Below, piece by piece: positions 39,940 to 45,279 of a stretch of DNA of 64,000 nt (position 1 is the first letter of the stretch; each line of letters begins with the position of its first letter). The position numbers and the translations under genes were made by a program. The notes beneath the pieces were generated by a model. The model saw only the letters and a list, made by a program, of their open reading frames with translations. It was not told the DNA's origin and did not search any database. This DNA is from Salpingoeca rosetta (taxonomy: Eukaryota > Protista > Choanoflagellata): assembly GCA_033442325.1 (NCBI GenBank), contig JAWQFM010000035.1, positions 591,096 through 655,095 of the forward strand, written 5' to 3'.

Positions 39940-42900
39940 TCAGCAAGCGTCTGGGCAGTTCTTTGTGGTGACACCAGAACCAACAGCTACGCATGAGCCA
40001 AGACCTTTGCAGTTAAGACGAGTGATGGCAGTGCCAGTTGCGTAAATCTTCTCCTCAATCGACGTGATGGATGCAAAGTCAATGTTACTCAGCGATGTGC
40101 ACGACTGCAGAAGGAGAGAGCCTTTGATCTCCGTGAGGTCACCAAAGTCAAGGTTGGTGAGAGATGGGTTGTTACTCAGGGCAACAAAGCCGCCAACACT
40201 TGTGATGCTTCCGAAGTCAATGCTGGTGAGTTGCTCGTTTTCCTGAAAGTACATGCCGCCACCCACTTGCGTCATGTTCGGGAAGCTCAGGCTGGTGATG
40301 TGGTCGTTGTGCTGGAGGAAAATGTAATCGCCCACGCTGCTGATCATGCTAAAGTCAACCTGGGTCAGCGTTGGAATAGTGAGATCGAGCTTGCCGCCGA
40401 CGCTGCGAAGACGAGCAAACGTGACACTCTGCAGGTTGTTGTCGCTCAGGTCCAGGTCACCACGCACATGCTCGATGAGACCCAAGTCGAGCGTGGTGAT
40501 GCCGACGTTGGCGTGGACACGAAGATCGCCACCCACATGCGTTATCAGGCCAAAGTCAATACTGGTCAGGACGTTGTCGCTGACATCGAGGAAGCCACCG
40601 ATGTAGGTGAGTTTGCTGCCAAACAGGATGGAGGAGAGTTGGTTGACGCTCAAGTCAAGGTCACCGCCAATCAGGGTCAGGTCACGGAAGTTGATGGTGT
40701 GAAGATCAAAGTTGTTTCCAAGATCGAGGCGGCCACCAACATGTGTCACATTGGCGAGGTCGAAGCTGGTGATGCTGTTGTCGTTCAGGACCAGGTCACC
40801 CGTGACAACCGATAGCGCGCCAAGGTCGATGGAGGTATAGCTATTGCCTGCAAGCAGCAGGCTGCCGTTGACATGTGTGAGACGGCCGAAGGAAATGTGC
40901 TCTTGGTTGTTGTCGGGGATGATGCGCAGCGTTGCCCGTGAAGTCACTGGCTGGATATTCTCAAACACAGTCTGGGCAATCGTCAGCACACCAGCAACAG
41001 TGGGCATGCTTGCAAAGTCAACGCTGACCAGCGCTGGGTTGTTGCTGAGGTCAAGGTCGCCAGCCACGAAGGACAGCTTGCCAAAGCGGATGCTGGTGAG
41101 GGCGGGGTTATTGCTGAGGTCAACGCTGCCACCAATGTCAACCACGTTGGCAAAGTCGATGCTGGTCAGGCCGGGGTTGCTGCTGACGTCAACGTTCCGG
41201 CCAATTGAGGTAATGTTACCACAGTGGAGGCTGGTCAGGGCGTTGCTGTTGAGATCGAGGTGGTCTGTCACGGCTGTAAGGCTGCCAAAGTCCACACGCG
41301 TGAGCGCGTTCTGCTGCAGATAGAGGGAAGACACGCTCGTGAGAGCACCCAAGGACAAATTAGTGACGGCGTTGTTGTTCAGGCGAAGATAACCCAAAAC
41401 GCTTGTCAGGGCGGGTATCAGCACGCTTGTGAGCATCGGGTTGTTCTGGAACAGAAAGCTGCCGGTGCGGGTGAGGGAGCGGAGGTCAATGCTCGTGACC
41501 CTGGGATTGTTCCGCAGGAAGATGGTACTGCATGTGCCGAGTGAAGGGAAGCTGACGATGGTAAGCCCAGAGTTGTTGTCAAACTGCAGCTGAGCGGCGC
41601 TGGTGACGTTGCCAAAGCGGATGAACCTGACGCCACTGTAGGCAATCTGCAAATTATCAAGGAGCGCACCGTCCTTGAGGGAGACGCGGTTGGTCCCGAG
41701 TGACAGCCGACCTTGCACGTGTGAGAGCGCTCCAAAGTCAAGCCACTGCATGTTGCCGATGCCCACGTCCCCGCCAACAGTGGCCAGCGCACCAAACCGG
41801 ATGTGGTTGATGGGGTTTCCAGAGAAGTACATGCGGCCCCCCAGGCTTGTGATGGACCCAAAGTCGATGCTAGTGAGCGCTGTGTTGAATTCAAAGTACG
41901 CAATCCCGTCCACACGGGTGAGGTTGCTGCCGGAGAAGTCAAGGCTGGTGAGGGCTCTGTTTGAGACAAAGTACAGCATCCCGCCAACAGTTGACAGGCG
42001 GCTGAAGTTGATGCTTGTCAGGCCCGGGTTGGAATGGATGAGCAGGTCACTCCCAATAGTCTGGATGTTACCAAGGGTGAGCGTGTTGAGGCTGTTCACT
42101 GCGTTGATGCTCACCACCCCGCCCACCGTCGTGAGGAGGCCAAAGTCGATGCTGGTGAGGGAGGGGTTGGACCCAACATTCAGGTCAGCGCCAACACTGC
42201 GCACGGAGGAAAGGTCGAGGACACGCAGGTCGTTGCCGTTCAAGTTGACACCCAGACCCACGTGCGTCAGCGCGCCAAAGTCAATCTCGGTGATGACGTT
42301 GTTGGAGAGGTCGATGCTGGAGGAGACGCTGCGAACACGCTCAAACTGCACAGAGGCCAGCTGGCCGCCCTGTGCCGTGCCGCCCTGCGCCGCGACTGAC
42401 CCGACGGTGGTCACATTTCCAAATGAAAGCGCCTCTGTGGCAGGCGAGACATCCACGACGCCAATGTGCTGCAGACGGGCTGCCTCATCGCAGCAGCAGT
42501 TGTGCACTGTCGTCGCTTCACAGTAGTTGGCGCCGGAGAACCAGCCAACGACGGTGGCGTTGCTACAGTCAAGTGCAAACGGCGCAACGCACGTGGTGGT
42601 GGTGGTCGTTGTGGTGATGGTCGTGCTGGTGGTTGTCGTCGTTGTCTTCGTTGTTGCTGTGGGAGTCGTTATGGTGGTGGTCGTGGTGGTGGCAGTCTTC
42701 GTTGTTGCTGTGGGAGTCGTCGTGGCGCCACCACCGGTACTGCTGCTTGCGCTGATTGCGGGAACAGCAACAAGGGCGACAGGGACGGCGACAGCCGCGG
42801 CCACGAGAGCCGCAACCGCCACGAGCAGCAGCAGTCGGCTGCACGGCCAGCAGCGGCTGCGCTTGACAGCCACATCACTGTCCGCAACTTCAGAGTCGAG

Positions 42901-44315
42901 CAAGCGAAGGTCCTGCAGCATCGGGTTCATGACAAACGACGGCAGACCCTTTGACACGCGGTCGTTGTCCTTGGACGCGTTGCGCTTGGGTGGGGCCGGG
43001 GGTAGGGGCAGGTGTGGGTGGTTCCGGCTGCGTTCGTGCAAGAAGAGGAGACCGGCGTCTGGATCCGAGTACAGAGCCTCTTCTTCTTCCTCTTCCCCAT
43101 CGCTCTGGTGGCTGTTTTCGACGTTGTCGTACAGGGTGGTCTGTGCAAGCGGCACCGCGGGCTGCATATACCCCTCTTCGTGCTGCTGATGCTGCTGCTG
43201 TGGCATGTCGGTGAAGACATTTGCGCTGTTGCCTTCGACGTTGTCGTACAGGGCATTCTGTGCAAGCGGCATCGCGGGCTGCATGTGCTGCTCCTCGTGC
43301 TGCTGCTGATGCTGCTGTGGCATGTCGGTGATGGCGCTTGCCCTGCTGTTGTTGCCGATGTTGTCGCCATCAACGCATGTTTCAGCAACACTTCCGCCTG
43401 TGTCCTTCACCAGCAGAAAGGGCTTTGGCTGCTCGTACACGCGAAATGTGTCGTCGTCACTCTCATCCGCACGCCCAAGATCATACACGTCGTTGCCTTC
43501 CATGTCGACGGTTTCCATCTGCACGGGGCTCTCTCGAATGGCCTACACATGTGTTGTGTTGTGCATGTGATCATGTGTGTATGTGTGGGTGCATGGGTGC
43601 GTGTGCATTAGTATGCGTGTGCATGTGTGCGTGTGTGTGCGTGTGTGTGCATGGGTGCTTGCAGGTGTGCATGGGTACATGGGTGTGTGTGTGCACACAC
43701 TGCATACAATTGATTGGGTGTGCGAGCTTTTGCATGTGTGGATGCGTGGCGGTGTTGTTGAGCAGGGAGAAGCAGACGAAGGACAGATGAGCAGAAAGAA
43801 CAAGCATGCTTGGATTCAAGAATGAACCAGACAATCCACGGTGGCCTCTCTCCTCGCGTTGTCCCTGCCCTCTCGCACTGCTGTGCTCTCACCTCAAGCG
43901 CATCGGCAATCTGCTGCAGGAGCGTGTTCGGGACGCGGATGTCCCTGCCGTCGTCCTCGTCTGGGAACCAGCGGCAGTGGACAGTGTCCTTGGTGAAGTG
44001 GGCCTTTGCACTCGGCACAAGGAGCTTCGTGCACATCTTGATGAGGAAGAACGGCTTGCTTTGCTGGACCATCTGAGACAGTTCGACGCTGGTGTTCCAG
44101 GTACTGGCCGGGTCATCTTGGCCATACATGCTCGTGCCCATGGCGACAACCAAACAGCACTCGCTGAGCGCGGTCTTTGCACTCTCCTTCAGGGCGCCCA
44201 CCGCTCCGCTGGGCCCAAGGAACACGCTCAGGGCACGTCGCTCGAGAGCTGCCTTCAAAGCATGCGCAGCATTGTTGGCCTCGTCCCCTCGGAACGACAC
44301 GTACACATCGAACAT
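39940..44315 (-). CDS. Type II transmembrane receptor: N-terminal TIR-like domain, Tyr motifs and PxxP, TM, Thr stalk, about 35 LRR/receptor-L-like 22-23 aa repeats (2 exons, about 1341 aa)
   Basis: Exon 1 44315-43893 (gccATG; 141 codons; FDVYVSFRGDE..LKAALERRALSVFL..ALSECCLVVAMGTSMYG..WNTSVELSQMVQQSKPFFLI; donor GAG|gtgaga, phase 0). Exon 2 starts at 43542 (tgtag|GCC ATT CGA) in frame with the 1194-aa ORF. TM LLLLVAVAALVAAAVAVPVALVAVPAI 42834-42754, preceded by KRSR. Repeat consensus LTSIDFGxLTxVGGxLxLSNN; many N-glycosylation sequons C-terminal to the TM. Confidence 0.8.
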
Positions 44316-44573
44316 GGCAGTCACGCCGATGCTGGATTCGAGGGCCGTCAATGACAGGCCAACAAGCGCGTGCCGAGGCAACAATGGAAGTGTGGATGAA
44401 GGATGGACAGCAGGCGCCGTGTCGTCGAGTCTGTCACGCGCAACTGTCCAACTGTCGCTTGTTGTTTGTTGGGTGGGCGTGGCTGATTTTGATTTGAGCA
44501 AAATCCGGAAAATACATGCATATCGTCACGAATCGTCGTACGATCAAGTGTGTGTTGTGCATGGTGTGTGCAT

Positions 44574-44656
<83 letters not shown>

Positions 44657-44876
44657 AGACTCACGGCGTTTGGGTTGAAAAAGTTATCAAATACCGCATG
44701 CATGCATGCATGCCACTTTTTCATTTATGGCATGTCGCCAGCACGGCTGGCAGAGTTTTGACATGCGTGTTGTGTTGTGTTGTGTTGTGTTGTGTTGTGT
44801 TGTGTTGTGTTGTGTTGTGTTGTGTTGTGTTGTGTTGTGTTGTGTTGTGTTGTGTTGTGTTGTGTTGTGTTGTGTT

Positions 44877-45279
44877 NNNNNNNNNNNNNNNNNNNNNNNN
44901 NNNNNNNNNNNNNNNNNNNNNNNNNNNNNNNNNNNNNNNNNNNNNNNNNNNNNNNNNNNNNNNNNNNNNNNNNNNNNNNNNNNNNNNNNNNNNNNNNNNN
45001 NNNNNNNNNNNNNNNNNNNNNNNNNNNNNNNNNNNNNNNNNNNNNNNNNNNNNNNNNNNNNNNNNNNNNNNNNNNNNNNNNNNNNNNNNNNNNNNNNNNN
45101 NNNNNNNNNNNNNNNNNNNNNNNNNNNNNNNNNNNNNNNNNNNNNNNNNNNNNNNNNNNNNNNNNNNNNNNNNNNNNNNNNNNNNNNNNNNNNNNNNNNN
45201 NNNNNNNNNNNNNNNNNNNNNNNNNNNNNNNNNNNNNNNNNNNNNNNNNNNNNNNNNNNNNNNNNNNNNNNNNNNNNNN
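44877..45279. other. Assembly gap (N run) flanked by (TTGTG)n
   Basis: Run of n. Other gaps are at 60065-60164 and 62453-62552, inside P450 introns. Confidence 0.99.

Follow-up and report, generated by a model that had tools for sequence, protein, structure and literature searches.

The window analysed here (the whole stretch of DNA, 64,000 nucleotides of contig JAWQFM010000035.1 of the choanoflagellate Salpingoeca rosetta) carries on its minus strand a gene whose first exon encodes a TIR domain, and whose second exon (3.6 kb) encodes a linker, one membrane helix and a leucine-rich repeat (LRR) ectodomain of the BspA type. Exon 1 is part of an expressed TIR-encoding gene, and its residue Glu78 is very probably, as judged from sequence alignments, homologous to the Glu that is catalytic in SARM1 (E642) and in the TIRs of plants and bacteria. 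The domain is an unusually diverged addition to the known TIRs, on a receptor of reversed domain order.

Gene structure and expression

The coordinates and residues given for exon 1 in the initial annotation proved exact: the ATG lies at 44315 and the 141-codon exon runs on the minus strand to 43893, where it adjoins a GT donor (GTGAG). The minus-strand translation of the exon starts with MFDVYVSFRGDE, includes the stretch STWNTSVELSQM and also reads DDPASTWNTSVELSQMVQQSKPFFLIKMC internally. Splicing to exon 2 is seen in three RNA-like public runs from two studies (X17, X18 and X19), each of which gives one contig of 4.2 kb with the joint 43541/43892, and the read depth in these runs is about 0-2 in the intron interval as compared with 41-635 in the exons. 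A further run with DNA-like behaviour, X3, retains the intron interval at even depth. Across the junction the spliced product reads ADALE, the end of exon 1, followed by AIRESPVQMETVDM, and neither translation nor an ATG scan found any in-frame ATG between the nearest upstream in-frame stop and Met1.

Exon 1 encodes a TIR domain

Direct searches with the exon-1 peptide did not recover a TIR. Pfam gave no match to any family even at E≤10, phmmer against the PDB gave chance matches only, PADLOC returned one spurious match and no TIR, and the chance matches of these searches were to titin and Cas5/6; a word-index protein search with the 141-residue exon, whose length filter leaves out long relatives, returned nothing. 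The TIR assignment is based instead on family, profile and fold evidence. An exhaustive phmmer search of 1.8 billion proteins recovered 270 proteins at E≤1e-3, of which 53 reached E≤1e-10; the best match had an E value of 6.8e-18 with 41% identity. The family members with species names are the S. rosetta proteins PTSG_02868, PTSG_02597, PTSG_03080, PTSG_06287 and PTSG_12838 together with a Choanoeca flexa transcript, the rest coming from environmental assemblies, and each of the 20 members that were looked up was either choanoflagellate or an environmental sequence. Pfam matched TIR_2 (PF13676) in 49 of 51 aligned family domains (best 9.6e-10), TIR (PF01582, like TIR_2 of clan STIR) in 21 and the TIR-like DUF4062 in 31. 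Among eight full-length family proteins scanned, five had a TIR_2 match, all of 20-27 bits, and the subfamily is poorly annotated because such scores fall under the 28-bit gathering cut-off. In addition, a protein-language-model look-up pointed to TIR_2 clusters (0.93-0.94), which was taken as a lead only. A search of the PDB with the family profile recovered Roq1 (2e-4), RPV1/RUN1 (RPV1 at 1e-3) and the SARM1 TIR, all within 2e-4 to 4e-3 and over βA to βC only, and a profile of the C-terminal half (residues 53-141) gave chance matches only (designed repeat proteins, CRASP-2 and 14-3-3).

The family alignment used from here on (A2, 106 sequences) served for structure prediction with AlphaFold2 (AF2), column counts, the tree and the hhalign comparisons. 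With it, the AF2 model of exon 1 reached a predicted local distance difference test score (pLDDT) of 93.5 and a predicted template modelling score (pTM) of 0.88, and it contained every element of the βA-αA...βE-αE order; the pLDDT was only 37.8 when no alignment was given. DSSP on the model assigned βA to residues 4-7, αA to 10-26, βB to 31-33, αB to 41-52, βC to 55-60, αC to 75-84, βD to 89-93, αD to 101-106, βE to 113-115 and αE to 130-140, so that the predicted structure has the five-stranded flavodoxin-like α/β fold. The top 20 Foldseek matches were all SARM1 or plant TIRs, with template modelling (TM) scores up to 0.71; the RUN1 TIR and the G601P structure of SARM1 were among the fold-search matches. 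These data put the TIR fold of exon 1 beyond reasonable doubt, and the earlier identification of the domain as a TIR stands far beyond chance on the phmmer family (E 6.8e-18) and the hhalign comparison with canonical TIRs (E 1e-15).

Glu78 and the catalytic position

Glu78 is the only acidic residue of helix αC in the AF2 model, and position 78 is Glu in 105 of the 106 family members and Gln in the remaining one. The pattern E78-L79-x-x-[I/M]82 corresponds to the E-L-x-x-I of canonical TIRs. Since the PDB alignments ended before αC and the profile of the C-terminal half gave chance matches, canonical bacterial TIRs were collected for profile alignment. About 100 were obtained from metagenome contigs with a degenerate YDVFISY pattern; a degenerate DNA pattern for KYDVFISY in viral contigs yielded four chance matches and no TIRs. 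The family was then aligned by hhalign, both globally and locally, with three template sets (seven SARM1-like TIRs, 31 with SxWxxxE, and all 98), giving six runs with probabilities of 97-99% and E values from 1e-10 to 1.7e-16. In all six, Glu78 fell on the conserved Glu column of the templates, with posterior digits of 6-8 (about 0.6-0.8). One template, L016, aligns with the human SARM1 TIR at 2e-31, the Glu of its DWVKNEI standing opposite the Glu of DWVHKEIV in SARM1, which by chain numbering is E642, the residue mutated in PDB 7CM7 ("Sarm1 E642A").

The metagenome TIRs L021, L036, L044, L059, L100 and L108, as well as L016, were strikingly SARM1-like, and the motifs of L016 (SPGALDRC...DWVKNEI...GKNIIP...GFEWP) fit the published view of a bacterial origin of SARM1's TIR.

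The placing of Glu78 at the catalytic position in the initial annotation was thus upheld as a matter of alignment, through its location in αC, its near invariance in the family, the three canonical profiles and SARM1 E642. The plant-like N-terminus that had been reported is real, as Roq1 and RPV1 read YDVFLSFRGEDTR. The proposed match to the SxWCxxEL helix held at the Glu and failed in the spacing, because W73 and E78 are five residues apart as against four between W and E in canonical TIRs (SEWCMAEL, SPWCLAEW). hhalign accommodated this with either a one-residue insertion at N74 or a shifted W, and Glu78 stayed on the canonical Glu either way. Position 77 was also considered as the catalytic equivalent and rejected: it is Val in the exon-1 copy and Glu in only 53 of the 106 members, whereas Glu78 is near-invariant and carries the E-L-x-x-I pattern.

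Conservation within the family

In the exon-1 copy, 12 of the 13 positions conserved in at least 95% of the family are kept (S7, R9, E12, L24, Y64, G65, T75, E78, K93, M94, C95 and W116), the exception being F5Y. At lower conservation the kept positions number 10 of 15 (85-95%), 12 of 22 (70-85%) and 6 of 24 (50-70%). This retention, graded by conservation, fits purifying selection on a pocket. According to the DSSP string of the model, most of the kept polar and aromatic positions would lie where αC begins, or at or just past the points where βA, βC, βD and βE end on their C-terminal side, which is the ligand-binding side of this fold class.

The exon-1 domain evolves fast, and all the named members of the TIR subfamily to which it belongs are choanoflagellate. 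Gly10 (which gives the SFRG) and Trp73 are found in the exon-1 copy alone among the 106 domains, and the family consensus reads differently (DIFISLRFxEA...FSTxEEL...KPFFLVKMC). Since these plant-like residues are private to the exon-1 copy, the resemblance to plant TIRs is not an ancestral trait of the family, and the "plant/bacterial type" label that the domain had been given is inapt.

Protein architecture and features of the locus

The spliced product has 1341 residues, with the TIR followed by the linker, the membrane helix, and the stalk and LRR ectodomain (Table 1). The helix is the sole segment of the protein with a Kyte-Doolittle mean above 1.8, and basic residues lie on its N-terminal side; no signal peptide or N-terminal hydrophobic segment was found in the translated 1341 residues. 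Because of these two features a type II topology is predicted, with the TIR inside the cell. The ectodomain matches LRR_5 (1.4e-14) and Recep_L_domain (1.6e-11) in Pfam and contains 11 N-x-S/T sequons for N-glycosylation and 13 Cys. The order is therefore not the type I order of Toll-like receptors (TLRs), in which the TIR is C-terminal to the membrane helix: here the TIR precedes the helix and the LRR ectodomain is C-terminal.

Table 1. Features of the TIR receptor gene, in window positions
Feature	Position	Strand	Evidence
5' leader, RNA-like contig coverage	44316..44523	-	Contig ends, ATG scan
Exon 1, complete TIR domain, residues 1-141, from initiator ATG	43893..44315	-	Open reading frame, sequence, family matches, AF2 model, fold matches
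BB-loop region, residues 34-40, GPSGAVG, diverged	44196..44216	-	Column counts; AF2 block 31-40 with pLDDT 82, lowest confidence of the model
Helix αC, residues 75-84, TSVELSQMVQ, E-L-x-x-[IM] pattern	44064..44093	-	DSSP on AF2 model; pLDDT of block 71-80 = 92
Glu78 codon GAA, candidate catalytic Glu	44082..44084	-	Sequence, 105/106 conservation, six hhalign runs, SARM1 E642 mapping
Intron, 350 nt, GT..AG, phase 0	43543..43892	-	Contig joint 43541/43892 in X17, X18, X19; genomic sequence
Linker, predicted cytoplasmic, residues 142-377, acidic, Q/H-rich, duplicated YDNVE segments, PxxP stretch	42835..43542	-	Translation of spliced model
Single transmembrane helix, about residues 378-404, KRSRCWPCSR just ahead	42754..42834	-	Kyte-Doolittle
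Thr-rich stalk and BspA-type LRR / receptor-L-like ectodomain, 934 residues; stop codon 39940-39942	39940..42753	-	Pfam

Two out-of-frame upstream ATGs are present at 44521 and 44517 (minus strand), at the edge of the longest contig, and the one at 44521 opens an upstream open reading frame of 57 codons (44521-44348, minus strand) that ends 30 nt ahead of the main ATG. Since the longest RNA-like contig, from X19, is the only one that reaches them, both may precede the true transcription start. The intron (43543-43892) and the upstream intergenic sequence at 44560-44880 are mostly CA/TG microsatellite-like, and 403 N of assembly gap (44877-45279) lie immediately upstream of the gene and leave the promoter region incomplete. 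Two further contig joints, 42692/43294 and 43203/43298, fall in the linker-coding part of exon 2 (42692-43298, minus strand) and occur in all four runs including X3. They have sides of 21 nt only and non-canonical ends, and instead of splicing they seem to reflect cross-matching of contigs from Q/H-rich and Thr-rich coding repeats that are paralogous or repeated. An exact-product look-up of the exon-2 open reading frame gave no record, and a word search with exon 2 returned distant LRR proteins only, with no orthologue.

Origin and family contexts

A bacterial origin by horizontal gene transfer had been raised for this domain. When one genome from each of 185,579 bacterial and archaeal species was searched for the family motif [KI][PN][FYI][FY]L[VI]KMC, there were 33 pattern matches, none of which was confirmed as a relative by tblastn. 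A recent bacterial transfer finds no support in this result, which, coming from a single motif, leaves room for distant or ancient relationships. The TIR subfamily is found in several other architectures. It is N-terminal in an LRR-Roc-COR protein and in a SecA/helicase-like protein, and C-terminal in an ankyrin-repeat protein, in P0142 (ENA, 1512 amino acids), an NPHP3_N (NACHT-like)-WD40 protein that resembles nucleotide-binding LRR (NLR) proteins, and in P0064 (JGI, 1427 amino acids), which carries teneurin-NHL, LamG, PT-repeat and ephrin-receptor-like domains and may be a receptor of conventional order. It also occurs in proteins that UniProt names SH2-containing.

Choanoflagellates have diverse TIR proteins, and the catalytic Glu has been noted in choanoflagellate SARM1 (Richter et al. 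2018, PMC6040629). Furthermore, a TIR atlas describes several wholly eukaryotic, uncharacterised clades (PMC13142454). Members of the present family (F2U3K2 and others, and their EukProt ids) were not found in the accessible parts of the supplementary tables of two 2026 preprints.

Comparison with known TIR proteins

The TIR of SARM1 / TIR-1, an NAD+ (nicotinamide adenine dinucleotide) hydrolase (PDB 6ZFX, 7ANW, 6O0U and 8P2M), shares with exon 1 the Glu, through the alignment of Glu78 to E642 by way of the SARM1-like bacterial TIR, an S-x-R motif after βA, and a gapless stretch of equal length from Glu78 through αC to βD (ELSQMVQQSKPFFLIKM against EIVTALSCGKNIVPII-). Identity is however only 16-17%, the exon-1 protein has neither ARM nor SAM domains, the loop before αC is two residues shorter, the position of the BB-loop G601 is Val, and the family motifs KMC and W116 are absent from SARM1, which forms a cytosolic octamer and not a membrane receptor. 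Plant TIRs, both of TIR-nucleotide-binding-LRR (TNL) and TIR-only proteins (RUN1, RPV1, Roq1, L6 and RPS4), are similar in their DVxxSFRGxD/E N-terminus and the E-L-x-x-I on αC, but sequence similarity ends before αC, the exon-1 protein lacks an NB-ARC, and its conserved Tyr-Glu loop is five residues longer than that of Roq1 (14 from Y64 to E78, as compared with 9). With bacterial TIR_2 domains (AbTir, ThsB-type and the SARM1-like clade) the domain shares the Glu column at hhalign probabilities of 97-99% and E values down to 1.7e-16, although identity amounts to about 15%, none of the bacterial or archaeal genomes has the signature motif in a confirmed relative, and there is no defence-island context.

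Animal TLRs also combine an LRR-type ectodomain, one membrane helix and a TIR, and Glu-dependent TIR catalysis in a surface receptor has a precedent in TLR4 (bioRxiv 10.64898/2026.04.20.719644). The exon-1 protein differs from them in its reversed order with an N-terminal TIR, its predicted type II topology with no signal peptide, its BspA-type LRR_5 / receptor-L-like ectodomain and its membership of another TIR subfamily. Within S. rosetta itself, F2UB80 (1352 amino acids) is another choanoflagellate TIR protein with Glu at the catalytic position, and its TIR makes cyclic ADP-ribose (cADPR), an activity that is lost on mutation of the catalytic Glu (bioRxiv 10.64898/2026.04.20.719644). Its TIR belongs to another clade outside the exon-1 family, a domain of 223 residues with long inserts that starts KYDAFISYRQ and lies internally (residues 1034-1255) in a large multidomain protein.

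Possible mechanism and alternative explanations

Catalytic TIRs have been defined by an αC Glu that reaches into the pocket, the criterion being a Glu Cα within 3 Å of ThsB E85 on structural superposition with its side chain toward the pocket (Hurieva et al. 2026, bioRxiv 10.64898/2026.04.20.719644). By structural alignment, most eukaryotic TIRs outside the TLR and IL-1R clades keep this Glu, and cADPR is made by the TIRs of invertebrate TLRs and by that of TLR4, in the latter in a Glu-dependent manner (bioRxiv 10.64898/2026.04.20.719644). The TIR of the exon-1 protein, a single-pass LRR protein, is predicted to face the cytoplasm, which makes activation by clustering, as put forward in the initial annotation, a reasonable idea. 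In what we regard as the most likely mechanism, ligand binding at the ectodomain would bring the receptor tails together, the TIR domains would then assemble and form a composite active site, and NAD+ could be cleaved or cyclised through Glu78 to ADP-ribose or a cADPR isomer; cytosolic paralogues may contribute through homotypic TIR contacts. We infer ligand-driven clustering and enzyme activity from this arrangement, and consider the chance that the exon-1 copy is an active NAD+-processing enzyme to be a little less than even.

Several observations weigh against such activity. The exon-1 copy is the most diverged of the 106 family members: a hidden Markov model (HMM) of the family built without it gives it 115.7 bits, as compared with 186±15 (minimum 140) for the other 105, which were in the training set and are thereby favoured, and in a FastTree phylogeny of the 106 domains its terminal branch is the longest, at 1.31 substitutions per site as compared with 0.50±0.27. 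In the BB loop, Gly39, present in 99 of the 106, is replaced by Val and the family Cys34 by Gly, so that the exon-1 copy lacks the intact loop with its conserved glycine that is needed for a composite active site; glycines are kept at 37 and 40, and a shifted loop is possible. The BB-loop mutation G601P abolishes the activity of SARM1. The loop before αC is changed as well, with Met for T63, Pro for T69, Asn for S74 and one inserted residue (D68). The position of the copy as the most diverged member, together with the loss of the conserved BB-loop Gly, makes the activity of the exon-1 protein uncertain. In addition, no sequence similarity to solved TIRs could be detected in the C-terminal half of the domain, and non-enzymatic TIRs score only slightly lower in the fold searches, which also gave Hydra TRR-2 (14.0), IL-1RAcPb (13.2) and MyD88 (12.4). 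Fold scores by themselves cannot tell enzymatic TIRs from scaffolding ones. Finally, TLR2, IL-1R9 and IL-1R10 keep the Glu and yet are inactive in vitro, because their Glu points away from the pocket (bioRxiv 10.64898/2026.04.20.719644).

The same divergence, the missing Gly39 and the altered loop before αC would be expected if the domain were a scaffold or pseudo-enzyme, that is, a homotypic assembly module recruiting cytosolic proteins of the subfamily (LRR-Roc-COR, SH2-containing and helicase-containing), with Glu78 inherited and NAD+ turnover gone. Inactive Glu-containing TIRs are documented, and the many cytosolic architectures with this TIR subfamily offer possible partners. We regard such a scaffold as a real possibility, if a somewhat doubtful one, since 12 of the 13 near-invariant positions (among them E78, S7, R9, K93-M94-C95 and W116) have been kept despite rapid change elsewhere, which would be unexpected for a dead pocket, and E78 is kept in 105 of the 106 family members. 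The invariant K93-M94-C95 and W116 have no counterpart in canonical TIR alignments and hint at a modified pocket, as might suit an enzyme with another substrate, either a nucleotide or nucleic acid (for example a 2',3'-cyclic nucleotide monophosphate synthetase or nuclease, as in plant TIRs) or one using the N-glycosidase chemistry of DNPH1 and nucleoside 2-deoxyribosyltransferases, which share the fold. We consider this improbable, because the best matches are NAD+-using TIRs and NAD+ was processed by every Glu-bearing eukaryotic TIR with experimental data in the 2026 survey. Lastly, the lack of a Pfam match and the longest branch in the family tree could be taken as signs of a decaying or accidental exon, a TIR-like remnant with no function in the mature protein. 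That explanation is largely refuted, and in our view most improbable, given the intact 141-codon frame, the precise phase-0 splicing to exon 2 in three runs, Met1 as the first in-frame ATG, the confident AF2 model and the retention of positions in proportion to their conservation.

Significance

The exon-1 copy is invisible to Pfam and its subfamily scores at or below the Pfam cut-off, so that receptors of this kind are under-counted in censuses based on Pfam thresholds. As to catalysis, the finding is by itself incremental, for outside the TLRs eukaryotic TIRs are already known to retain the Glu as a rule, and both TLR4 and another S. rosetta TIR have already been shown to produce cADPR. If the exon-1 domain were active, a close unicellular relative of animals would have a surface receptor that converts a signal from outside directly into NAD+-derived chemistry, which would strengthen the 2026 proposal that the ancestral TIR function was catalysis and not scaffolding. 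The fuller proposal, that this reversed-order Toll-like receptor of a unicellular animal relative is a ligand-gated NAD+-processing enzyme which clusters its N-terminal TIRs and makes a cADPR-type messenger with no adaptor, we consider rather unlikely as a whole; if it were true, receptor-coupled TIR catalysis would be older than animal TLR-MyD88 signalling.

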